64,000 nt of DNA from Dimorphilus gyrociliatus (GCA_904063045.1 CAJFCJ010000015.1:186001-250000), one strand, 5' to 3'. Positions 37,750 through 59,772 are shown, counted from the first letter of the stretch. Notes: generated from the sequence alone by a model not told the origin. A program made the numbers and translations.

Positions 37750-40700
37750 ATGGAATTTGACATAGTAAATTCCGTGGAGGATGCATATAATCCGAATAAT
37801 AATTTATACATACGTGTGCTGCACAAGCGAATCGAACAAGCTAACTTGCCTGTTGACAGTCAAAGATTTAGGAAAACCGCCGAAGAAGATATCGAAGGCT
37901 TCTTGAATTCGATTCATGTGCCTTTTTTTGTGTTGAAAAACTGGAAAGAGACAATTAATGTCAATGTCGTTAAAAACTGTTTCAAAGGACTAGTCTCTTT
38001 TCTCAATTTGTTTAGCAACGAACTGAAAGAACATAGTAGAAACGGGTCAAGACTAGGTGATAACGAAGAACAATTAAAACTCCAGAGAAGTGCCTTTAAA
38101 ATGGCTGTTTACTTACTTTGTGAATTTGGTGTAAGGTTAGAGAAAATGAGTATGAAAGCTGAAAAAGAGGCAACAGCAATGCAAACGGGACGAAAGAAAA
38201 GAAAACAGTCATTAGGTATTATATTTATCGTGATATTGTATTGTTAAGAATTTCAAAATTCTTTAGCGCGCTTTCTGACAATGTCATTTCGCTTATACTT
38301 TTCAGCAGACACAGACCCCTTAGCTGGTCACTGGAAGGTGGAAAAAAAAGAAAGTATTGTAGCAGTCCTAAGGCTTTTCAAACAAGATGTGGACTCTCTT
38401 TGGAATCCTCCAGGAGCTTCGAGAGACGTACTGAATTGTGTTCTCACTTATGCGTATCTTCTATTAGACAGTCCAATGATTTTGTATGATAATTTACTGT
38501 TGGAACAAATATTAACCATATTAGCCATTTTCATCAAAAGGTATAGCCATGAACATGCCTTCTGTCAGCAAATCTTAAACAAAATGCTTAATGTCGGTAT
38601 GGAGGAGAACGATATTAAATCACTTGGAAGGGGTGTGGCAGGAATAATTGAAAAGAATAGATTTAAACCCCTACTAAAATCATTCCTTCTTCAGTTTGCA
38701 TCTCCTGAAAATGATAATGATAGATCTGCAAAAGGGCTGGCTTTTCTTCTGTCTGCTTTTGGAGAAAAACTATTCTATTATATGCCTGAACTATCTGACG
38801 AATTATTCAACATTTTAGAAATAGATAACCATTTGTTAAGGTCAGCAGCCCTATCTGTTATTGGAGATACTTTAATTGGAGTTTTTAATCATGAGAATCG
38901 TCGAAAACTTGAATTGGGCAACGTTGCTGAAGAAGAAAGTAAAATATTGGATTTTTTCTTGAAGCAGCCTGATCCGTTAAAAGTCTATCTTGATAATCAA
39001 GACGACTTCTCTACTGCTCTTTTCGAACATATCCATGACTTACACAGTGCTGTAAGAGCAAGGGTTTTAGGCATTTGGGAAGTGATCTACGAAAAAAATA
39101 GCGTCAGTGTCGACTTTATAGTGAAACTCGTCGAACGAGTAGCTCTCAGATTATATGATAAAGCAGCATATGTCAGAAAGTCTGCCTTTAATTTTCTTTG
39201 CAGTGTTATTAGGGATCATCCATTTTCTGATGATATTCTAAAGCGTCCTCAAAGCGAGATTTTACAAGAATCTGAGCAGAAGAGAATAGAAGTGGAAGAG
39301 AAACTTAAAAGTTTTCAGGAAAATGAAAGTGAAGCTGAAGTGGACAATGATGTGGCTCAAAAGAAAAAAAATTTGAATGAGGCTTTGCATTTTATTGATT
39401 CTGAAATTAAATTTGTTAAGGCTATAACTCAAGTCTTCCCAAAGGCCCTTTCACAGCTGAAAGCGAAACAGTCAACGGATCGAAGTGTTGCTATCAAATT
39501 TTTTGCTCTGTGTAATTCTCTAGGTGTAATTGAAGCAGAGAACGGAGTTAAAGAAATTTTACCTTTGATTTGGAGTGAGGAAGAAACGGTTAGGAAGGTG
39601 GTTATCGATGCGTTCAAAGGTCTTTTTTGGGGAGAAGACGATTGTCCTGATAATCGAAAACAATCTATTGACTTTGTTGCTAAAGTTAGTAAATTAGTAG
39701 AAAATGCGTCTTACGAAGAATTTGATGCTATATCTGATATTATCGGTAAGATGAATATAGAAAGTAAACTTCTATGTTTTTGCTTTAACTTATTCACTTT
39801 CAGGCTGTGTAAATCTATCACCTGCCATTATGAATTCTATAAGACAAATTTTGTGGGAAAGATTTACAAGAAAACTACAACCAACTAGTGAAGAGGAAAG
39901 CAGATGCGCTTTGCAATTGTTAACGATGATTGCTAAATGTGAAAGAGCAATATTTACAGATAACAACGTAGATGTTCTAATTACAGAAGGTTAGTTACAT
40001 TATAATCTTCATATTTTTTTTATTAACATTATTAACATTTTTTCAGGAATAGAAAAACGTGGAAGAGGAGACTTTACATTAGCTAAGCTAACGTTTGATT
40101 GTCTTCTCCAAATGATTCCTCCTGGGGTTGAGGGTCGGTCTAAGAAAGATCAAGCAATCACATCTAAGAATAAAGGAAAGATATCCAAAGCAAAATTATC
40201 TCAGGAAAAGCGCAGATACAGTAATGAGGATCCATTAATAAGGAGCATATGCAATTTAATAGTAGATGGATTTACCGATAAAAGCCAAAAAAAGTTCTCT
40301 TACATTTATATGGTTGAATCGGCGTTGAAATTCTTGATGGAATTTGCTGACAATTGCATTATAATATACGACACAATACTTCAACAGCTTATGGAGCTAT
40401 TAAAAAAGAACATATCAACTGAAGCCGCACCTGGGTCTGAACAAGAAATGGAGCTAGACGATTTGTTAAGCGACGATAATGAAAGGTGTTCTTTCCTGCC
40501 AGTGTATTTGGTCACGAGGTTTATTTTTATTATTGGTCACATGGGTCTTCAATGTTATGTTTATTTGAAAACTGATGTTCTTGTAGAACTTCAAAACCGT
40601 AAGAAAAATAAGAAATTGTCAATTAGTCCAAATTTTACTCCTCAAGTTAATGCGGGAGGTCTTTCTTTTCTCGACTCTATGAATGATAGTCAGAATTTAG

Positions 40701-41791
40701 AAACTGAAGACGAAACTGAACGTATTGATAGGGTTTGCGATGAGGAGCTGGTTACTAGCAACCTGCTGGGAAAATTCAGCCAGTTTATTATCGATATCTG
40801 CAGGGATTCTTTACGGAGAGATGTCAAAAGCAAAGATTTACAAGTAGCTGCTGCTGGCGCACTTTGTAAATATATGATAGTATCAAAGAGATATTGCGAA
40901 GATAATTTACAGTTGGTTTTCTCGTTAATTAGAAATTCGCCTCTGGCTGATGTTAGATTAATATGCATTGTATCTGTTGGAGATATGATGTTTAATCACA
41001 TCTCAGAAGTGAATGAATGGAATGCTAAGCTATATGATCAATTGAGTGACAAAGATCCACGCATAAGAAAGGCTACTTTAGCCGTATTATGCCGTTGCTT
41101 CGAGTATGGTATCATAAAAATAAAAGGCAACCATTTGGGACAGGTCGCGCTTTGTTTGGTTGATAAGGAGAGAAGAATAGTTGACGAAGCAAGAAATTTG
41201 TTTAAAATCTATGCGAAACGACAAGAGATTATTTATAATGCTATTCAGAACGTTGTCACTTACCTTGTCAGTTCTACTAGTGAATCCCGATGCGATGAGG
41301 ACGATTTCAAGAAGATAATCGACTACTTAATACAATTTCTGACTAAAGTTAGCGAACACGAGAGTTTTGGTGAGAAGTTATGCGCTAAAATGAAAACGGC
41401 TGTAGACGAAAGGCAATGGCGTCAACTGGCCTATTGCTTCACTAAAATAATGCCTACCCCTAAAGTTGTCAATACGCTAAATAGAAAAATTGCTGACATT
41501 GCCGACAAACTTTCCGAGCCATTTGTTCGTGAGTCACTTAGAAGTTTGATTTCAACTGCCAAAAAGATGAACAAGGGCAACGAACCTGAAATAGCTGAAT
41601 TAGAAGATAAAATTCGTCGCGTATTAACTGGAGAGACGTTTAATGCAGACCTAGAAGATGAATCTCCGATGAAACCTAGGAAAACTCCTGACAAACGACT
41701 AGTTGGTAGAGGCCGAGGAAAGGGAAGAAAACCTCTTGCGAAAAAATCTCAATCTAACTGGGCTTATGAGATGAGTAGTGAGAGTGATTAG
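37750..41791 (+). CDS. NCAPD2: Condensin I HEAT subunit CAP-D2 (Cnd1/Ycs4), divergent, 1278 aa, 4 exons (37750-38215, 38306-39745, 39804-39989, 40047-41791)
   Basis: SAFKMAVYLL, IHDLHSAVRARVL, RLYDKAAYVRKSA, AAAGALCKYMIVS..YCEDNLQL, VRLICIVSVGDM, LYDQLSDKDPRIRK and IKIKG (KG loop). All exon phases are consistent. Confidence 0.85.
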
Positions 41792-42936
41792 TTGTTAACA
41801 ATCGGTTTTGTACATAGACTTTATAAAAAAAACATGTGTATATTTTTTATATCTCATGAGTTGAAAAATACATTATATATTACAAACTTGTTTCTTAAAA
41901 GATTTCTTTATTAATATCTTATGAATATTAGAAGCGAGACTTTTACGTATCTGATTAAGCTAAGAATACATATTGGCTATTTTTCATAAATTATAGTCTG
42001 TTGACTTTTTGAAGAATAATGGAAAAAGAGACGCCATCTCTCCTAGAATCCATCACTGTAAACAAAGTCGTCGTTGTTTGTATATACTGTACATTTAATA
42101 ATTTGAGCACGATATAAGGCTTTAGACTTTTCCTATCGTTTTTGCTATTTAGACTCTGATAAATGTCAATGATTGAAGGGAGTTTTTGTTAATATGCTTA
42201 ACATAATGAATAGGATATTTATCTTTGTTCTAATATTTCTAATATATCCCAGCCGGTTTTGCCAGTTTGCCAGTAAATTAAAAAATTGTACCCTTAATAC
42301 TTGGATGTTGGCAAAAAAAAGGATTTTTTCAAATTTTTCCAAACGTCAACCCATCACAAATAAAACGCATTCGTCATTCGTCTTGCTTATGCGCTTCCCA
42401 AGAGACCAATTGACTTAACCTCATTAAAGTTTCTAATAGATATTTTTCATTTAATCTTGTTAATTCTTTAAAAACAAAATGGATGCTACTAAGAGTAATA
42501 AATGAATGATAATGTTCACTGTTGTTGAACTAAAATTGAAAAGATATTGTATGAAATATTTATGATACTAATAAATAAATAACGTTAATATCTTTCGTTT
42601 TTTTATTAAATATTTCTTCAATAGTTTCTTTAAAGGAATAAATAAATAAACTTTTACTAATTAAATAAATTTCATTGTTTTGAACAAGAAACAATTTATT
42701 AAAAAATATTATTCATTTTGCAGGAAATTCTCAGCCTCAATTCATCATTTTCATTTTTTATATATAGATTAAAACACAACAATCTCTAAATTTCAATTAT
42801 GAAAGAAGTTTTTTGCATAGCCTAAATTTCGGATTCTTCCAATAATATACCTAATTTCCTATCGGTTCTGGAAAAGAAGAAGAGAGTGAATAAAAATATC
42901 TATACTTGATAAACTAATAGCAAAAGGTAATGCTAC

Positions 42937-44812
42937 TTACGATGACAGTTTTATACTTTTCATAATACGAAATGCTAGATTAGCAAGTTTGTGCTTGTGA
43001 AGGCACGATATAAAAGATTCTATTTGGTGACATCGCCTAAGTAGGATTTGAAGAAGAACATCAGCCTTCTCTTTCGGTTTTTGCTTTAGCTAGATAAAAA
43101 CAAAATGGAATAAAAAGATCAGAGAGAGGACTCTATAAACTATTGTGAAATAATTACCTGAATCTCTTCTTTATGATATACGTTTAAGACATGTAAGAGA
43201 ATCAAATCCTGAATTAATTCTTGACTAGGATTAAGTAAACAAGTAATCTCGTAAAAAACTTTACGTAGTCCGGATCTTTTCTCGTATAAATTCTGAATAT
43301 AACTTTCAGTTCTGAATTGGATAGTGAAAAGTGCAAACATAGAAGGGAACATAAAGAGAATGTACGGATTACAAATGAAATATTCAATGCATACTCGACA
43401 CTTTCTTCTTTACTTTCACAATGATTATTCAGCAGAATAGTTGAAATATGATGTTGATAATCGACGTTAAAACAATCAATAAATCCACTCAAATCACTAC
43501 TTTCTTTTTTCATTATTTTATACAATTCAATTGCTCGATAGAAAAGCTAATTGGAATGAATAAATTATGTAAATATATTAATAGGCCTATAATTGTATAT
43601 ATCGAATGAAATAGAGTGTAATATAGGTTAATATAGCAAAGTTTCTATTCTTACTTACCCCTCTAGTAAGTATATATTCAACATCTTCTCTAGATACGAG
43701 TCCTTTATGTAAAATGTTATTTAAAAGGAATCTATTAACGTCCAGATGGTAGAATAGATTTTTTGAGTTTTTTATTATAGTTCTCTTATTCTTAATAACA
43801 AGTAATTCATAATTTTCCGGAAGATAGAAATTTGTCGCTGAACTGGAAACAGAAAAATTGATTTACTATATTTGATATTTTATAGTTAATAAGCCCTACT
43901 TGAAAGTATCGTTCTGAACCTGAGATAAAGACTGGGCAAATGATTCATTTTCCACTTTTATACATCTAATAAATTCTTCCAGCTTATGGCATCGTCGTAG
44001 TAGAATTGCATAAAGGCTGTCAACTTTGGATTTGTATAATTGATTGTCTTGAATCTGGGTTAAATTAATGAAGAATTAATGTCTAAAATTATTAATTTTA
44101 TTCTAATAAGAACTTTTATAGTTTTGTAATGATCCCTGTTAATAACGTTAGCTATCATTAAACAGTTGAGAAACTTTTCAGTCACCTTGACCTGTGAAAG
44201 AAAAGCAGTTTGCGTCTTCTGTAGAGCGTTACGATTGTGTTCTACATAGGTGAAATCTTCGTGATTAACTCTAAAAGGGAAAATAAAAGAAAAAAGACGC
44301 AGATAAGAAATAAACAATGCAATTAAAATATAAATAAACACCTTCTTGTTCTTGGTGTAGATATAGAGATGATATATTGTACAATATGTCCTTGTTCATC
44401 GTCTTTCAAACAGTGCATAAATTCGTTCAATCGTTCAGGGACAGTGAGAATAATTTGAACAAGACTATTAGCTCGATCGAACAACGACTAAAATATGAAA
44501 TAAAGAACGTCTAGATATATTGATTATCGTCTTACAATACAATTAGTAAAGTGTTTTTACTATATGTACAATATATAATAGATATAAAGTATTCATTGAA
44601 CTATAAATACAAACTTTTTCCTTATTGATTAGATAACGGGCTTGCACACTATTCAATACTGATTCGGATACTAGACTATTAACAAGTTTTCCATTTACGT
44701 CCAAATACTTTGACATGAATAAAGCAGCCCTTTGTAGAGCTTCCTTACGGATACTCTTCTCAAATTCAGACACATCACTCTCACAAGTCTTTCGCCTAAT
44801 TAATCCAAGCAT
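42937..44812 (-). CDS. Protein with four tandem CARD-like death-fold domains, at least 432 aa, 8 exons (44812-44615, 44487-44342, 44270-44114, 44054-43900, 43842-43659, 43546-43395, 43311-43158, 43089-42937); the 5' end may extend further
   Basis: Hand-spliced open frame containing four ~85-aa repeats with the CARD helix pattern, e.g. LIQDLILLHVLNVYHKEEIQ|LKQKPKEKADVLLQILLRRCHQIESFISCL. Intron phases alternate 0,2,0,2,0,2,0. Confidence 0.8.
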
Positions 44813-46609
44813 ATTCGAATTAAAACATTGATTTTTTATCTTGTTTTTTTTTTATTAAAACAAAAAGAAACGAAAATAGAAAAAATGACAAAAATCTACA
44901 AACTAGGCTGAAAAGTAAGAAAAAAGATATATTTTATCTAAAGAATAAAGAGGAAATATTCCCTATATTTTTTAAAATTATTTAAAAAAACAAACAAACA
45001 AACAAAGGGAAAAAAAATCAAAAAACTATTCAAGTATTGTTTGTTGTCATTGTTGTTTTTGCTCTCTTTGTTCTTTATATGTACAGTATAAAAATTAACG
45101 TACTTGAATATTATCTTTCTACTATAAAAGGATTGTAAAAATTCCAAAATCTTATCGGTTTTTTGTGTGTGCTAATTCAATGAATGAATATGCATATACT
45201 GTATTATATATATATATATAGTATAGTTATGCAAATAATAAATATCAATCATCAATCGTTTTCTTTTACTATTTAACAAAATGCAGGTTTTTATTTTCTT
45301 ATCCTATATACTTCTGCAATATAGGCCTTAAATAACACTTATGTAGTTTTTTTTTCTTTCTATTATTATCAAGCTTTTTGATAAATAATAATAAATTATG
45401 CACTTAAACTATTATTGTTTTTATCTTTAATAGAACGACGCACGATTAAAATATTTCTCCTTTCTTTCTTTCTCTCATTTTTTTTTTAAAAAAAAAGTTA
45501 AGAAGAAATTTAGCATATTTTTTTCTTTTTGAAACTATTCAACAAAATTTTAGTGTTGAAAACGATTTTTTTTCTATATAGGCCTACCGAGTACTTTTCC
45601 ATTACTTCATCTATCTATCTATCTGTACCTCTTCGTTTTGGCTACATACTGAAGATTTAGAGGTGAAGGTCGTCTTATACAGTTTTCAAAATACACTTAA
45701 AAAATGCCCATTTTCAATCACTAAGTAATGGTTATGCATATAGAAAAACAATTAATTAGTAGATATAAACTTAAATTATATAATTATGTATATTAATTAA
45801 TATACAAACTTTTGAGCAGTTCCACATTTATTAAAGCAATTCCATGAGCAAACACAACCAAAAGGCATATCAAAACTAAGAAAAATAGCACTAAATATCC
45901 AATTTTTTCTTTACGAGCATCGACGATATAATCATATTTAATTAATCAACGTCTATATTCGGTTGAACCCAAAATATCACAAACTACTAGAAGAAAATTT
46001 AGTAGAAGTTGATCAGCTTGGTTTTGTTCTAAATATGCTGCATGTTTTGTAGAGTATCGATCGATTGGCCCTGTTGGACGGTGTCGAAGTACAATAGGCA
46101 CTAAAAGTGTAATCTCTGCCTAGCTTCACTTGTCCTTAAAATCAATTGTATTATTAAACTTTTGTTTTATATTATTTTATTAAAAATATTTGTAGAGTAG
46201 TATATATTTTCTCTTTATTCTCCTCTCTACCTCTCTCTCTCTCTCTCTCTCTCTTCCTGTATCTTTGATACATACAAAAGAGGTATTTAAAAAAAAAACA
46301 ATAAATAATTTTCTCTTCTCTTTTTATTATTATTTTCTTATATTTCTATGCAAAAAATAAACATCTTTTTTATGACTTTTTTCACTCTTCTTTCTTTTTT
46401 ATCTTCTAACTTTTAAATAAATAAACTAAAATGTTTCTTCTCTCTTTTCTTCCTTTCTTCTTCTCTTCCTCTTCCTCCTCCTCCTCCTTTATACACTTCT
46501 CTCTCACTTCCTTTAAGCTCTTTAAGCATCTCTGAAATTGTTAAAAATAGAAAAAACTAAATATTCATAAACTTTATCAGATGTTTCTTAATTTTTTATT
46601 GATTCCTAC

Positions 46610-49600
46610 TTACGATACTTCTAGATGACCATCTTGTACCAATTGTTGGACTTTTTCCCAATCTGGAATTCTTGATGGCGGCCTATGATCATCCTTACCA
46701 CCCCAAGTATGACTTTTCTTTAATATAGCAGGTCTTCTTCTTACGTTATCGTTTATATCCCTATGACTTTTACCTAGTATTGGCGAATTTACACCATCCG
46801 TCTTTGATCTACAGTCCATATGTGGGAAGAGATCGTTACTCGAGTAATCTCTCATACAATAAGTTAATTCGTCGTTTTTATCCTTTTTACCATCCCACAT
46901 TTCTCTGTACGTTTGTTTGGTCCTTTGTATCTCTTCGAACCAAGGATCTTGGGTTTGGAAAACGTATATAGCTGTTATAATGTTCATCTCATTTTTATAA
47001 GCTATCACAAATTCGTTATTTTCGTTCTGTTGAATGTGTATAGCGTCTAATCTCATAGGAGGTTTGTATATTTTCAAATTGACTCTATCCTCAAACTTTC
47101 TTCCTTTTCTACATATGATTATAAAGTCAGTAAAAAGGCAAAGGATCACGTCGTGATGCCTGCTGGACTCTTTCATACGCACGACACCTTCGCGTATGAA
47201 TCTTCTTAGCCAATCTTCAGGGCAACCGGCCATAGAGGACGTAAAAGAAATCTTAAGGCTTTTCTTTAAATTTTCACTTAAATTTGGTATTTGATCAATA
47301 AAGTCGTAGCCGTCTATTCTGTTTTCGAACTCGCTAAGAATCTCTAATCTCTCTCTCATTCGAAGTTCCTCTTCAACTCCCTTTAAAAAGTTTTTAATTC
47401 TTTCTAGACATGCTTTGAGACTCTCGCTTTCTTTAGTAGACTTGAGAAGACGTTCTAAAAAGAGGGTATGCCTCGTTAAGTGATGCATAGGAGCAGTTAG
47501 GTAGGAAGATAGTTCGTGCTTCCCAAGACCCCAAAGAATTTCGTTAACCCAAGTATAGAACTTGCTAAAATCCGAATTATTCCTTATGGCATTTTTAATA
47601 TAATCTTTTAACTTATCAACAGTCATATGATAAACATGTTCCTCTTGAAATAAATCACTTATTTCATCTCCCAAAGCACTCATCTTTTTAATATTATACA
47701 AGTTTTTAAAATTGTCTACCTGCATTAAATTTCCCTCTTTAATACTCTCGATAAAAGGCAATATTACGTTGTTCCACCTACTACAACATTGAAAGTACAT
47801 TTCTTTGAGGTTCGATACAATTAATTTCATATCCAAATCGGTAAAGAAACCTCTTTGAATTAGATCATAAAAAGGTGAAACGTAGACATCAACAAGCATC
47901 TTTAATTTCTTTAGATAAGACGACTCAAAATGTATAGTTTCCCATATTATATTTTGCTTCTTTTTCTCATTATCGCTTAATTTCTTATGATCAATATAAA
48001 CTGTCCAAGATTCGGGTAGTTCCAAACTATTTAATTCGCATTCCGTAGCACTAACGTACAAGTGAGATGGTAAAGGCGGCAAATGTGCTCTATACGATTC
48101 AAGAATATCTTGAATTTGACAATTATCCTCTAGATTGACTGTTAAAAGGAATAAATAAAAAAACGAATGATTGTTATTAATTAATAATTAATATCTCATT
48201 TACTCAATTAGTATATAAAATTAATGCAAATAATGTATTTATATGGAGGACGGATAAGAGGAAAAGAGGAGGGGAATAAATAGGACACAGATAAGATAAG
48301 GGAATAGGGTATCAAATTGAAGAGTTATATAATATAAAAGTATAAATAAGAGGTATTAAAGAATTTCTTTATATAAAAGTCCATCTCTTCATAATTTGCT
48401 AGTATATACGAATATTAATCATCTCTTTATTGGGTTTACACTTACTCTTGCCATCTTTCAAAGCCTTTTGAAATCCTTTGCAAATAGAAGTGAAGATAGA
48501 AAAGGGGGAAAAACGGAGAAGAAAAGACAATTATTAATCATTTAATAGATAATAAATAAGTAGATAAAAAAAAAACAAAATAGAAAAACATAAAGAATTT
48601 AACTTTAAAAGAATGCAAATAATTATACCTTTTTTGTGTTTGAATGGTAATTTTATGGTTTAGATTGGTGTAGTTTTGTTTTTTAAAAAAAAAAATAATA
48701 AAAAAACTAGACTTACCAGTTGCAATAACAGTAAGATTTGCTAGATGGCGAACCGGACTATCTAGACTTAGAGGACTGTTAGAGTTTTCAATACGAACTT
48801 CAACTTTTGAAAAGTCAATACTAGCAATTCCCGGTTTCTTTGATACTTCGAACAAAGCATCTCGAAGAGTTTTTTTTGGTTTTATATCTATCAAGAAGAA
48901 TCGCGGCTCTTCGTAAAAGTCAATCCTTATTGTAAAAGTTCCCTGTAATGGAAAAAGCTGTTAACCCTCTTTTCTTTTGTGTACCTTCTAAGCATTACGT
49001 AATCAGTATTGAATATGTACATGCATATATCAATAGAGTAATAGATGGATGGCTAGATAGATAGATAGATAGACAGATAAATAGATAAATAGATAAAAGG
49101 AAGAGTAAGGATAAAACAAGAATTTTTCCTTATCTTCTAAACCCATTTTGATAATCAAATAAAAAGATAAAAGGAATAACCTTACAATAAAATCAGAGTT
49201 ATCTAAAAAAATATTATTTCTCTCCACTTTAAATAAAGACATTTCAATAAAAATCCCATTTCTGTCATTAATGAAAATAAATATACTGTAACATTGTAAA
49301 AAAAAAATAAATATTGAGTGATAGGCCTACTATTGAAGGCTTTTGTGACTCCATTCTGTTTAATGTGTATTTATGTGTGCTGTGTGCGGGTGTGTATATA
49401 CTAATATAAAAGTGTATATATATATTATTAGTATACATGAATGTATTTACGTTTATGTAAACGTATAAAGACCCAAATATATATAGTGAAGGGGCAGATA
49501 CGTATAAAGAACTGGGAAGAATAAAGGGGAGGGGGTAGTAGTAATAGTAATGTTATTATTCATGATAGATTGTTATTATTATTAATTGCAAAAATGATTT

Positions 49601-51844: not shown

Positions 51845-54800
51845 TTAGAGCATTCCGGGTCTCGCATACATTGGTAGATGGTAATGGTTATACGTTAAAA
51901 ATGATAATAGACGTGTATCGACTGCTTTCTTGGTCCCATTTTTATCCATTTCATTTAATAGAGATCTCCTCTGTTTTGGTCCTAGTGCATCCTCCTCTTC
52001 GCTTATCAACATACGTACTCTTTCCTCTACAGATTCAATATCTATTTTTGGTCTATTCGATAATAATTCCCTAATTTCGTCTCTTAGGTCTGTAAATCTA
52101 TCATGGTATATTGAAACTGCCCAAGTTTCTTTGAAATATTCATATAAATCTGGTATTAATTTTTCATCAAATCTCGAAACCAAATTGTTCAAAAGACGTT
52201 CGTGTAAACCGTACAAACAACTCAACATTGTTGTGGAAAGTGGAGATTTTGATAGACACGTAATTGTTTCAATCGTACCGTATTGATTGATATGCAAACT
52301 ACAATAGTTTTCCGTCAATTCACCAGTCGTCAAGACTCTTCCCTGAAATATAAAATAAATTCATTAATCCAATAGATTATATTTAATAAACACAGTATTA
52401 TTAGTTTATCTCTTACGTAATTCTTTTGAGATTGCGCAACTTCTATTGGACATTCAATACCAGGTTTTCTCATTCTTAAATAATACACATATCCGGGGAA
52501 GATAGCACTCTCCATTCTTGGTTGTTTATACATTGGAACAAGCTTTAAGACATCTTGGGCTGGTTCGCTATCAGGATCCAATGTGGGGTCAAAAAGCGTA
52601 AGGAAAGAGTGAGCCAGTTGAGTACCAACTTCCTTTGAGTTAAATTCAGCGTGCGTTAAATCGTCAGCTTGGAATGCTCTTTGGTATTTTGTCACGGGAC
52701 CGGCAGCTCTAATGGTACAGTCGTTTGTGTGAAATTCTCCGTCAATTACCAAACGGCCATCGTATACAAGGCAAGCATCGTTTAATGAACGGAAAGCTTC
52801 GTAGTCCACATCTTTTCGATGGAATGAAAAGAATACACCAGCTTCCAATTCAAGTGGCTTTCTATTGGAAGTAAAAGACACTTTTTGAATTTCTTCTATT
52901 TCATCAACTGTATCGTTCCAAAGTGCAAGTATATAATCTCTATGAACAGTCACCCCTTGAGCGGATAAATTGAAAAATACTGCATTTTCGACCTGTGGAT
53001 TATTAAAGCACATGGAAGAGGTTCCGTCCTTCGGAGGAATTACAAGATGTATACGATTTCCATCTACACCTAATTCCATCATCGACCTAATACAGGTAAG
53101 AGAATCAAGAGAATATCCGTAAATGACAGCATTGCTTCGGGTACCAACAAAGAAATTATCTAGCCAATAGAGAGCAACGGCAGATTCGTAATAATCGTTG
53201 ACTGTGAAAAGATTTCTTGGAATTATTCCATCCCATCTTCTATCTTTATCAAACTGAGCTTCCTCGCTTGTTGCCAAACTCTCAACATGAGCTCCATTTG
53301 GCGCTGGAACCTGATACTGGGTTCCAGTTCCAACAACCATATGATCATAAGGAACAGCGAATTGTCCGTTTACCCAAACTAACTTCTTCCTTCTATCAAT
53401 TTTCGTCATTTTACCATAGACAATGTTACACCAACTTCTCAAAGACATTCTGCAGTGATCATCCGTACTATAACAACCAGAAGATGAAAGGAAACTATCC
53501 CTTAGCTGCTCTGATGAAAGTTCGCCGGGTAATCCATGAGGGCTTATTACGGTTATGTTATTAAATTTCAAATGAGGGCAGAATAGGAGAGTTTCCAAGA
53601 ATGATATTGAAGTATCAGAAGCGCCAATAACAACGATTCTAGCGTTTATTGTAACTTTTGGTTCAAGCATCAATTTACGATTTAAATGTAAAAGACCAAA
53701 AGGTTCTTTGGCCTCTAAAATTCTTTCAGAAGGCGCATTCTTACCCAAAATGTCCAAATTGTATTCTATCTGCCTCCTACCACGAACAGGCACAAAATCA
53801 GACATTATTCCAACAAGGGAGAACGAATTGAGCTTCTCCTCATCGCAAAATGGAGGATAAATGTAGTAATAGCTACTTGTTACGTTAAATAGTCTCATTA
53901 CCTGGAATTTAAAGAGGATTATCTTAGGATTAGTAATTGTTTTTCTTTATATATCTAACCTCTTTTAAGATATGCTTGGATAAATGTTTAAAAGCTGGAT
54001 TACATGCAAAATGATGAATTCGAACATGCTCTCTCCTAGCGTGTTGGTTGAAGTAGATAAAATCTTCAATATTATAATGAGATCGAATATATTCGATATT
54101 CTCCTCATTCCTTATTATAGCTAAAGCTATAACTGAATCGTTAATTGTAGCGATGTATGCTCCTAATTTAGTTCCATCGGCATCTCTATGAGCATCAACG
54201 TATTGTTTAACATCTTTCATCATAGAATTTTGTAAAGCCAAATTGTCTACCAATTTCTGAATTTTCGGTATATCAGTAGCTATGCAATGGCTGACTTTAA
54301 GATTGCTAAAACAAAATTAACTAGTTAATAACAATAGTAATAATAAGGATAATGGAATAGATTAATAGATAATCTTACTTTAGTAATCCCGATCTACTAA
54401 ATATATAAAGTTCTTGAGGAAGTATACTGCCCGATCTTGGAATAGCTCTCTGTAGAAGAAAACAGGAAAACACTATATAAAATACCAAAAATAAATGGAA
54501 TAATAATAGCAAAATTAGTTTAAAATATCCATAAATCAATTATTATAGTGATCTTGATCCAAAAAAACATACAAAGAAACATAGAAGAATTATCTAGTTA
54601 AGAAATTTTCCAGTAAAACTTTTTTTTTTAAAAAAAAAATTTAATGATAAGAATGCAAAAAAAAAAAAAGTAACCAGAAAATTTCTACTGCAAATAAGTG
54701 AATAATGAAAAAAAAACTGGTAATTCTTTTTCTTATTCCTTTTTAAGACAACGTATTTCACAATAAGAAAATAATAACATAACATGCCCCAATTTTTACT

Positions 54801-56789
54801 AATATTAAAATAAACACCATTAAGCATCTCCGTAATTAATAAATACAGTATTTATATGAAAATATAGGTTTTTTTTGCTGTTTTTGTTTTTTTTTAATTG
54901 TTTACTAATAGAAAAACATTATTTAGAGATTTTAGCATGCAAAAATGAATAGAAAACCTTCCAAGCTCCTTCAATACTACCAAGAAGTCTTTTGTTAAAA
55001 ATGGCGAAAGTAGGCACAAGACGCTGTTTAGTTGTTTGTAGATGAAGGATATGATTTTATGTTAATTTTTTTGATTTAATTTTGTTAATACAAGTAATTA
55101 GTATTCATAACGATTTGTTTCATTAGTAATAGAATTAGAATTTGTTAATATTTAAATGAGGAATATGCTTATTAATTAACATTTAAACTTACCGAACAGA
55201 GCTGTAACATCGGAAATTCTGGTACCATATGAGGTACCGTTATTATGCAGAATTCCTTATTTGGATAGAATTCGAATACTTTGTACATGAAATCACCAGA
55301 TCTCATTTCGTATCTTTCATCTATGCAGAATAGTTGAATGCAGACGGCTAAATTTTCTCCGTAGTACGTTGGAAGAAATCTCTTCCTTAGGTTAGCTTCG
55401 AGTGATGCTGGTTTAGGTGTTTTTGGAACGTGAACTGGTTCCGCCTTTGGAGGATAATAAAATTTCAAACTTTTTTGTTCAATTCCACTGTTGTGTATAT
55501 ATCTCTTTCTTACCTTAATTGATTGACGATCGCTAGCCTCAGACCTAGCGGATTCTAGATCATTTTGAACTTCTTCTTCTTCTCCAAAAAGATCATCGGT
55601 GGTTTTTCTTCGTATTTTAATTTCTTCATCCGTTACTTCGTCCTTTTTACCAAAAACTTTAGAATTCTTTGAACTAGTGGTAGACAATCTTCTAATTTCC
55701 TCTGGTTCTGGTTCCGGTTGGGGAGTTGCTGTCTTTTCTGCTGTTTCTTCAAGAATGTCTTTGTCTGTACGTTTACAAAATCCGTAATATGGTCCTAATT
55801 CGAAACATTCGTTCAGAAGTTTTACATTTACATCCTCGCTAACGCTTAAAAATCCAACGGCTGTTCCTTCAACTTCGGCAACAAGACATTTCATCTTATC
55901 ATCTTGGGCTTCTATAAGTTCGGCTAGGAAAAAATCACCGTAAGTGTGCTTTAAGACTTCCGTTTGCCGGTTAAAAATTGGAGTTAGATCATCGTGATCC
56001 TCCACCCTAGCTTTGCGAATATGTAACACTGGCACATGTTGATGACGATAACAAATAAAGAGTGCACAATTATCTGGACCTTTGTTAAGACCGTCTCTTA
56101 ATTTAACTTCTTCGAAAATCTCAGATAGAGAAGCATCTGGAAATACTCCGATAGGAACACACAAAAGACAATAATGAATGGATGGAACAGCATTAAACAT
56201 TGTTCTGATAATTTCCTCAGCACAACCATGAGAATAGTCTCCTTTTGAGACGAAAAAATGTAAATAAACCGTATTTAGAGCGGTGCATTTTTCTAATTCA
56301 TAGTATTTCCATAACCAAGATTCCCAACCATTTACAGTAACTTCCTCTAAATTTGGGTAATCATAAAAACTGGCATGTCCTAAAACCTCTTCTTTATCAT
56401 TGCATAAAGTTACTGCTAGGGATGCTTTCTCTCTGAAATTAATAGGGAATATATCAATTTAACAACAATCTATCACATTGTTTACTTTTGATAAACCTAT
56501 AGTTACAGAGAATCTTTATTGTAATTTTTCCTACAAATTCAATATTATAGATAGTCAAGGAGTAATAATTAGGTGAAAATATAGTATCATTTACATAAAC
56601 TCACATTAAATTCACAACATTTACTCTGCCAAACAACGATTCTGTGTTTGGTTGAACCAATTTTAAGATTGCAGGAGCGTCAAGAGACTCTGTTCTTCTA
56701 GCGTTTATAATTTCCGGCATATCACACGATTTTGGCCGCTTCGAAGGCGATCGTGGCATTGGTGATGTATTTGTGTTTTGTCTTTCCAT
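51845..56789 (-). CDS. CFAP61: Cilia- and flagella-associated protein 61 (C20orf26), multi-exon
   Basis: ARRTESLDAPAI, LHIRKARVEDHDDL.PIF, YGDFFLAELIEAQD, AVCIQLFCIDERYEMRS, Rossmann-like NARIVVIGASDT and C-terminal YNHYHLPMYARPGML*. Confidence 0.95.
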
Positions 56790-56830
56790 CTTTTCTATTT
56801 TTATAATTAAAATTCTAAAAGGCGGCAGCG

Positions 56831-56845
56831 GTTACCCTTAGCAAC
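56831..56845. promoter_or_regulatory. RFX X-box upstream of CFAP61
   Basis: GTTACCCTTAGCAAC, starting 42 bp upstream of the CFAP61 ATG. Confidence 0.65.
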
Positions 56846-57140
56846 TTCCTACCATAGTGGGAAACGCGTTACATTCCTCTTATAAACAATGCTTTTTAGA
56901 CCGACACAGGGAACCTTACTACGTAAGACTACCAGTTGTTTTTTTTTTATAGTTCAAAATACTTTTCAGTTACATTTGAAAAGTAAAAAAAGCAATTATT
57001 TTCAAGTGCAAAGTTTACAAGTTCTTTAATTGTAAAGAAATTAAACTGAATTGCTGAAATTTGTGTATTTCTCTTCTTTCCACTTTATTTACAATGAAAT
57101 TTTTATTCATAAAAAAAATACCATTTCCTTTATTTCGATA

Positions 57141-59265
57141 TTAGTCATGCAAAGTTAAAAGCTGGAATTTATTACTGCTTAATAAATCTGTAGAAATATG
57201 GCAATCGTTATCTTGTTTTTCGGTGTTTTCGGAACTTGCCTCACTTTCCTCTTCTTCCAAGCTTTTATTCTCGTTCGTTTGTCCTTTACTTCTTTTTTTA
57301 GATTTTTTCTTATTTTTAGATGAATAGTCTATTAATTCAACTCCGGATGATAGAATAATTGTTTTCAAGTAGTGAAATTTCTGATATAGTTGAGAGTCGA
57401 CAATGAGAAGGTGTTCTATAGCTGATATTGGACCGGCACGTCTAGTTAAATCCAAGAATAGATTATATAAAAATGTACCCGAAAGAAACTTTGAAGGTTC
57501 TATGAATTGAATTGGTCTGTCTAACAAATCGTTTAACCATGATGAGACGAAATAAACACTTTGTAACTGAGCAAATGAATGAACAATTTCTGCATGAAAA
57601 GTATTAGCTGCGGAAAATTTTGGAGTTTCCTCATATTTCTTCAGTCTTTCGTAAGAAATATTATATGTTTCTAAATCAAATGAAATATAGTAATATCTGA
57701 TAAGACAAACAAGCACAGTGTAAACATGTAGCTCCGTTACTTTTGGGTTACTATTTCTAATCCAATATATAATAGCATATAAGACAGCCAGTAAATTAAC
57801 GTCTACCATTGACTCATCAAATTTACTAGTTAATATATTCAAAAAGATTTCCTTTCTTTCTCCAATTGACATTTTGTCAATTTTTTCAAGATTAGCATAG
57901 TTAACATCTTCTTTTTCAATAAAATATTTTTTTTGATTTTTTCCCGCTCTATTATATTCTTCAATACAATAATCTTTCTTTTTCTTTCTCTTCTCAGAAT
58001 CTTCAAGTTGTAACAGTATACTATATACAATTTTCCTCAGTTCAAAAGAAACATTATGGGCACTCTCTTCATTAAAATTTTCAATTTGAATAGGTAGAAA
58101 GATTCGATGAGAAATAAGAGCATTTACAACATTTACATCACAACTGTTACCCATTAAACGGTCTATAAGCCAATCTGTTATATATGTAAAATACATTGTT
58201 AATATATCTATTTTATTTAAATCATGAGAAAGAAAATATATGAATTCAAATACCTGGTATTTTCGTTCCTAAGTATGAATTTACCTCGCAACAATTACAG
58301 AATTGCTTTAAATCTTCCTGAAGATTTAATGTTGTACTACAATTAACTGTTGTATCTGTATAACGATCAATACATTTACGTAACTTCTCTCGAAGAACAT
58401 CTTTATCAGCCCTAAAAGGTTCCAAAATTCTTTTAAAAGCTTCATCGAAATTACCTATTTCATTTAGCCATGTAAATATTCCAATAGTTTTACCGTGTAG
58501 CCTTTTATTAAAGGGAACATCATTATTTCTAGGAAGTCTATATGTTCTAAATATTGTCTCCAAGTCACTATAAGTTATATAGTCATTTTCATGCATTGTT
58601 CCACCAAGAGCTAATAGCTTAGCGTCTAAGTTCGGGAAGAATTTAATTAAGCTATCACTTTCGTACATACAGGCAGATAAATATTTATAGCTATTCTTTT
58701 GCTTAGATACATTTATATCTAAATAATCGAGAATAAGAAAACCTTTTTTCAACTTGTAAACATAAAAATCGCTATCATTTGATAATACTGGACAATCAAG
58801 AAAGTTCGCCAATTTAGCAATATCGTCGTCCGCTTCAAATCTACTAGCTAAATTAAGAATACCATTTCTTTTAAGACTTTCTTTGAATTCTTGAACCATA
58901 AGTAGAGGAATTGCTTCTTGGAAAGGCTCTTTTCCTTTGCTGAAAGTTCTAGCACAGCAAATCTTTAGTTTTTCTTCGTGACGCCTTACACACGTTCTTA
59001 ATTTAGAATCGTCATTGTTATAACATCCATCCATTAGAATTATAGGTGTAACTTTACACTCTTTTAGGGCAGCAAAAAACATTTCGATAGCCTCTTTATA
59101 GTCACAATAATCTCCTCCATATTTAGTACTAACGCCATAGCGCCGATATATAAAGTACATTAGATTATTTCCATCAATTATTATTGTAGTATCATGCAGA
59201 TGAACTTGTTTTAAAAACAAATCACTATTATTATCAATGAAAAAAGTAAAACCTTTAATTCCCAT
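57141..59265 (-). CDS. ASTE1: Asteroid homolog 1 (XPG/FEN1-like PIN nuclease), 2 exons
   Basis: True ATG at 59265: MGIKGF...IIIDGNNL..YGGDY..MDG..FEADDDIA..VLSNDSDFYV. Exon 2 has LPIQIEN...ELRKIVYSIL and FLSGTFLYN. Confidence 0.9.
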
Positions 59266-59772
59266 TTTATCGCTCAAACTTATATCTATCTTTTGGTTGG
59301 TTAGAATTTAAGAAATTAAGAAATTCATTTAGATTCCACGTCGTAAATTAATAAAATTCTTTTTATTGTTTTCTCCGAGTTTACTGTAAAAACAATGGAG
59401 GGAAAGTGTGTCTTAGTTAACAAAACTTGAAATTCATCAGCACGAGTTAAATGTTCTGAAAAAAAGATAAACTGGTATACTTCCGGTTCGATCAGTTGTA
59501 AGAAGTTCTTTCGTCAACAAAATAAGAAAGCTAGTTCTTAAATAATAGTAGTCGTTTGCTTAAGTTCTTTCATTTTTGGTAGATAACTAACGAGAAATTT
59601 TTTTATATTATACTCATTTAGTATTCAGCTATAATGGAATATCGCTCAAGATGTAAAAAATTTAAGTAGATGAGTTTATTTTTGAACAAAAACTGTCTAA
59701 TTAATAGAGGAACAAAAATTTTGTTTGTACAGGTCAAGATGAATTCGGAGATTGAGTAATAAAATGTCATAA

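Follow-up and report, generated by a model that had tools for sequence, protein, structure and literature searches.

The window analysed here, a stretch of 64,000 nucleotides of Dimorphilus gyrociliatus DNA (GCA_904063045.1 CAJFCJ010000015.1:186001-250000), contains on its minus strand a gene whose predicted product would consist of only four diverged CARD-type domains, arranged in the order A-B-A'-B'. We read it as a real, stand-alone gene for a multivalent CARD scaffold or adaptor and give this reading, role included, a probability of roughly 0.4. The domain identity and the gene structure, taken together, are highly probable from the sequence.

Gene structure

The CARD gene runs on the minus strand from 44812 to 42937 as eight exons without stops, bounded by GT-AG introns, as determined by direct reading and by scripted exon reconstruction. 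The GC content of the window is 31% and the expected spacing of stops is ∼13 codons, so that eight successive open exons of 48–66 codons with matching splice phases are not due to chance. Exon 1 (44615-44812) opens with an ATG at 44812, the same start base as in the annotated gene of GCA_904063045.1, and encodes a 22-residue leader followed by the N-terminal half of repeat 1 (R1, type A) in an open frame that ends at the donor AAA|GTTTGT. The C-terminal half of this repeat is encoded by exon 2 (44342-44487). Repeat 2 (R2, type B) is formed by exon 3 (44114-44270, N-terminal half) and exon 4 (43900-44054, C-terminal half). Repeat 3 (R3, type A') begins with exon 5 (43659-43842), which is open and ends at the donor GGG|GTAAGT, and is completed by exon 6 (43395-43546), the 3' end of which is uncertain. 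Repeat 4 (R4, type B') comprises exon 7 (43158-43311), with an uncertain 5' end, and exon 8 (42941-43089), which ends either at a donor (42941) or, if unspliced, at a TAA (42939-42937). The original prediction of eight exons that pair into four two-exon repeats is thus borne out by direct reading, by the open frames and by the GT and AG bounds.

Introns in the model are 57–127 nt long. Each repeat is divided near its middle by a phase-0 intron: intron 1 (44614-44488) in repeat 1, intron 3 (44113-44055) in repeat 2, intron 5 (43658-43547) in repeat 3 and intron 7 (43157-43090) in repeat 4. Phase-2 introns separate repeats 1 and 2 (intron 2, 44341-44271) and repeats 2 and 3 (intron 4, 43899-43843). 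The same alternation had been proposed for the whole gene and holds for these six introns; the phase of intron 6 is ambiguous, several GT-AG pairs leaving the frame open. A phase-2 choice (43394-43312, 83 nt) agrees with the module pattern and with the intron originally proposed, and an alternative phase-0 choice spans 43372-43293; a further candidate pair lies at 43419-43259. Upstream of the gene there is a low-complexity stretch at 44963-44998.

The 3' end and the public gene model

The TAA at 42939-42937, which had been taken as the end of the coding sequence, overlaps a consensus splice donor (TC|GTAAGT). This donor, at 42941, sits 20.7 residues past the conserved Cys of repeat 4, and the identical spacing is found at the module boundary after repeat 2. 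A strong acceptor, TTCTTCTTTTCCAG, is located 73 nt past the donor and would close a phase-2 intron 8 (42940-42868) in front of a probable ninth exon (42822-42867, minus strand), which encodes a 14-residue acidic tail and a TAG stop (42824-42822). The annotated gene of GCA_904063045.1 on CAJFCJ010000015.1 ends exactly at window position 42822, beyond the originally predicted end, and its DNA, at 228822-230812 of that record, is identical to 44812-42822. We judge exon 9 to be real on account of the donor lying over the TAA, the R2-like spacing from the Cys and the annotated end at 42822; the coding sequence is thus likely to span 44812 to 42822 with exon 9 included.

With exon 9 the predicted product has 446 residues and is 26 residues longer than the annotated product, which has 420 residues and no Pfam family on record. 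Six alternative splice choices yield exactly 420 residues, each by removing 26 residues from one repeat; examples are a donor at 44192 within exon 3 and a 78-nt intron within exon 1. Given the annotated length, the real mRNA may lack part of one domain. The annotation pipeline used for D. gyrociliatus drew on AUGUSTUS, protein alignments and PASA transcripts (PMC7854359), and owing to this mixture the 420-residue form may be either a real isoform or a choice made in prediction. The description of the protein as undescribed needs qualification, since the gene is already public as an uncharacterised D. gyrociliatus model; what the public record does not hold is its CARD content, as no Pfam family is entered there.

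Genomic neighbourhood

The CARD gene stands alone, with separate genes on either side. Upstream and on the same strand is a RhoGEF gene (46610-48082, minus), the open reading frame of which (46613-48082) is 100% identical to DgyrCDS10239 of Dimorphilus gyrociliatus. A paralogue of DgyrCDS10239 on a different contig, DgyrCDS9692, is 73% identical to it, and a Logan contig of 2.9 kb, probably from a related species, encodes a relative with 58% identity. Downstream lies a convergent gene for condensin subunit 1 (37750-41791, plus), which has two long exons that encode its Cnd1_N and Cnd1 domains, and ∼1 kb separates its stop codon from that of the CARD gene. No helicase or NACHT domain was found within the CARD gene or between it and these neighbours, and a tblastn search gave no paralogue of the CARD gene elsewhere in the 64-kb window. 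Farther upstream, at ∼51845-59277 on the minus strand, a single annotated gene of at least 1946 residues has Asteroid/XPG_I_2 domains as well as the N-terminal and dimerisation domains of CFAP61; either a nuclease-like gene and a ciliary gene have truly fused here, or the predictor has joined two neighbouring genes.

Identity of the domains

Pfam was queried with the individual exons and with four single-domain cores of 83–86 residues each. The CARD family (PF00619) has a profile of 85 positions and a gathering score of 23.9, and E-values are quoted for the full library of 24,736 models. With 25.1 bits, the core of repeat 2 (exons 3 and 4) exceeds the gathering score (E = 1.8e-5, positions 1-82 of 85), and by Pfam's own standard repeat 2 is a bona fide CARD. 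Exon 3 by itself, the sole exon to match any family, reaches 21.7 bits (E = 2e-4, positions 1-40 of 85). The cores of repeat 1 (16.8 bits, E = 0.0068, positions 3-81) and repeat 4 (17.0 bits, E = 0.0063, positions 18-72) both fall below 23.9; PF00619 is the top match for repeat 4 and is second to an equally weak unrelated match for repeat 1. These E-values cover the whole library; if CARD is taken as the one hypothesis made beforehand, both matches gain greatly in significance, and repeats 1 and 4 are probable CARDs. The core of repeat 3 matches no Pfam family up to E = 10 and is tied to CARD solely through internal homology; it is a strongly diverged copy that is recognised only via its homology to repeat 1. 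The original assignment of four CARDs, for which a Pfam check of each repeat had been proposed, therefore holds above the threshold for repeat 2, at a sub-threshold level for repeats 1 and 4, and without a Pfam match for repeat 3.

No DED, death-domain or pyrin model matched any repeat core in Pfam, and the exon-by-exon search gave no Pfam domain other than CARD. In agreement with the original prediction, no caspase, NACHT, helicase or kinase domain was found by Pfam in the exons and repeat cores. Against the PDB, a profile of the N-half exons gave eight weak matches, among them the cIAP1 CARD twice (2l9m, E = 0.18; 3t6p, E = 2) and the CARD of the CED-3 prodomain (E = 0.22), the cIAP1 and CED-3 matches all falling on the expected end of the domain. 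The PDB gave no match for the C-half profile, for exon 3 on its own or for the core of repeat 2 (phmmer, E up to 10 for the last).

AlphaFold2 was run on single sequences for repeat 3 and for repeat 2, the latter as a Pfam-positive control. Three long helices were predicted for repeat 3 (best pLDDT 76.5, the other four models at ∼46–51) and two for repeat 2 (best pLDDT 75.3, the others at 43–49), with just one of the five models above a pLDDT of 52 in each run. As the control also gave no six-helix bundle, single-sequence AlphaFold2 says nothing on the fold of the repeats.

Homology among the repeats and duplication history

For comparison with one another, the repeats were cut from the model at the phase-2 introns, giving four modules of 101–115 residues each. 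Smith–Waterman z scores against shuffled sequences are 11.9 for R2-R4, 10.5 for R1-R3, 7.9 for R1-R2, 5.7 for R1-R4, 2.8 for R2-R3 and 0.5 for R3-R4. When each repeat was scored with a hidden Markov model built from the other three, R1, R2, R3 and R4 obtained 41.9, 47.1, 21.3 and 30.5 bits, respectively, compared with 9.2–11.5 bits for the best of 500 shuffles (at most 9.2 bits for shuffles of R3). By these alignment scores all four modules are clearly homologous to one another. The pairwise identity among them is 17–27%, from which the duplications are taken to be old.

A maximum-likelihood tree of the four repeats separates R2 and R4 from R1 and R3 with a bootstrap value of 86. The geometry of the modules agrees with this grouping. 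The phase-0 intron and the conserved Cys of the F..C motif are 26 and 25 residues apart in R1 and R3, and 31 and 29 residues apart in R2 and R4; from the Cys to the next phase-2 intron there are 22.7 and 25.7 residues in R1 and R3, and 20.7 residues in both R2 and R4. The tree and the geometry together give the repeat order A-B-A'-B', and on this reading of the alignments the A-B pair itself has been duplicated, in two rounds of intragenic duplication. A single CARD module would have given rise to a tandem pair, and the pair, as a unit of four exons, would then have undergone a second, ancient duplication. With a phase-2 intron on either side of each module, duplications of one or more complete modules preserve the reading frame. 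Serial duplication of a single two-exon module was considered and rejected on the R2+R4 versus R1+R3 tree. The earlier proposal of tandem duplication of a two-exon module is accordingly retained as regards the homology of the modules and revised as regards the route, which passed through duplication of the A-B pair.

Search for relatives

When exon 1 was searched with phmmer in a set of 1.84 billion representative proteins, there were zero matches. This blank is unexplained, as the annotated D. gyrociliatus gene shares the ATG of exon 1 and the proteome is present in a sister collection. The C-half exon profile likewise had zero protein matches, and a protein search with the core of repeat 2 gave no candidate relative. 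The length window of the word-indexed search leaves out full-length relatives of a single domain, and the blank protein searches are therefore weak evidence. Exon 1 had no usable match in the ESM Atlas, and two exon DNA patterns had zero matches in metagenome contigs. Among sequencing runs, a metatranscriptome labelled 'coral metagenome' contains ∼9% of the sampled words from window positions 42800-44900, and the sample may contain D. gyrociliatus or a close relative; one further run shares 55% of the sampled words of the CARD gene stretch. A limited text search of the literature found nothing relevant on proteins with at least three CARDs, a blank that does not argue for their absence. Shuffling of death-fold architectures is a known trait of invertebrate genomes (PMC2575513).

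These blanks, together with the three of four repeats that score below the Pfam threshold and the annotated product without a Pfam family, are what would be expected if the repeats had lost CARD–CARD function and the product, built of helical repeats, served some unrelated purpose, or if the gene were decaying or mis-modelled. We regard this as improbable. All nine exons are open and have consensus splice sites in AT-rich DNA, and the pattern of hydrophobic residues and the F..C motif has been kept at 17–27% identity, which argues for long-term purifying selection.

Proposed function

CARDs work through homotypic contacts and helical assemblies. In the predicted protein, a short leader precedes each domain, the domain cores are joined by linkers of ∼17–22 residues and an effector domain is absent. 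We propose that the protein would act as a multivalent CARD–CARD scaffold. The two old domain types would probably bind different CARD partners, and, with each type present in duplicate, a pair of partner molecules would be brought into proximity. Annelids, D. gyrociliatus included, possess the CARD caspases caspase-2 and caspase-Y as well as CRADD, while APAF-1 was not detected (PMC11463336). Caspase-2, caspase-Y and CRADD are examples of such partners, and the outcome would be that proximity-driven caspase assembly is seeded or, alternatively, blocked.

The functional analogy that we favour for the A and B types is ASC, an effector-less adaptor with two death-fold domains of different specificity that bridges sensors and caspases. 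ASC differs in that it combines a PYD and a CARD, two subfamilies with one copy each, whereas the present protein has two copies of each type and only CARD-like domains. In RIG-I/MDA5 and NOD2, two adjacent and diverged CARDs act as one unit, as the A-B pair might do here twice over; those proteins, however, have two CARDs and an attached helicase or NACHT sensor, whereas the CARD gene has four and no sensor attached. The Pfam results for the repeat cores include no match to the RIG-I-type CARD model. A further likeness is to short c-FLIP, the vFLIP MC159 and the caspase-8 prodomain, in which covalently linked death folds co-assemble with partner filaments and promote or terminate them. These belong to the DED subfamily and have two domains, whereas the present protein has four CARD-like domains and no DED match.

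The absence of an effector domain is equally what would be seen in a decoy or capping inhibitor, which would occupy the CARD surfaces of caspases or adaptors and so end or prevent assembly. The CARD-only proteins ICEBERG/CARD18, CARD16, CARD17 and the iridovirus vCARD resemble the product in this respect, all being expected to act purely by CARD–CARD contacts, and the tandem-DED FLIPs offer a comparable case. Such CARD-only proteins consist of a single CARD of ∼90–100 residues, and those of mammals arose by recent copying of the caspase-1 prodomain. Their one CARD is close to a caspase prodomain, whereas the product described here would contain four CARD-like domains of 17–27% mutual identity; two anciently diverged types, each in two copies, suit a connector better than a mimic of one partner. 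Described death-fold-only proteins are, on the other hand, mostly regulators or inhibitors (PMC3775265, PMC7555848; for the tandem DEDs of vFLIP, PMC11874512), and tandem DEDs can both build and terminate filaments (PMC11874512). Weighing these points, we hold the inhibitor to be only a little less probable than a bridging or nucleating adaptor, which we slightly prefer. What favours the connector in our analysis is that the two types have stayed distinct ever since an ancient duplication, with each present twice, and that proximity-activated caspases need such pairing.

A special case, which follows the original proposal of a pre-assembled tetramer that could nucleate or cap filaments, is that the four CARDs form a pre-assembled seed of one helical turn, which would be constitutive and regulated only by expression or masking. 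One turn of a CARD assembly contains about four subunits, and RIG-I uses its tandem CARDs to build a platform of four units, a tetramer that templates MAVS (PMC11874512); linkers of ∼17–22 residues would in principle be long enough to join neighbours in a turn. A constitutive seed would nevertheless be hazardous unless some element controlled it, and no such element can be seen; from the A-B-A'-B' history one would expect two tandem pairs and not four equivalent subunits. Because the history predicts pairs, we rate the seed lower, as distinctly improbable. There is a similarly slender chance that, in animals with CARD caspases but reportedly no APAF-1, the two tandem-CARD pairs constitute a self-contained platform, either a ready-made helical turn or a built-in dimeriser for caspase-2 or caspase-Y. 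Covalent linkage would then replace oligomerisation by an NTPase sensor, with control exerted through expression or masking. The multivalent adaptor with two kinds of binding site remains our preferred reading.

Biological implications

An architecture of four CARDs and nothing else is unusual but not unprecedented in kind, and a role in caspase or immune signalling is a guess. CARD signalling depends on the number and the geometry of the CARDs that are brought together, and a natural chain of four covalently linked CARDs belonging to two types would offer an uncomplicated system in which to study how death-fold filaments are seeded, bridged and capped. The gene also provides a clean example of in-frame domain amplification by means of symmetric phase-2 introns. 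Annelids, molluscs and brachiopods have been reported to be without APAF-1, and the CARD gene could show how CARD caspases are activated in these animals.
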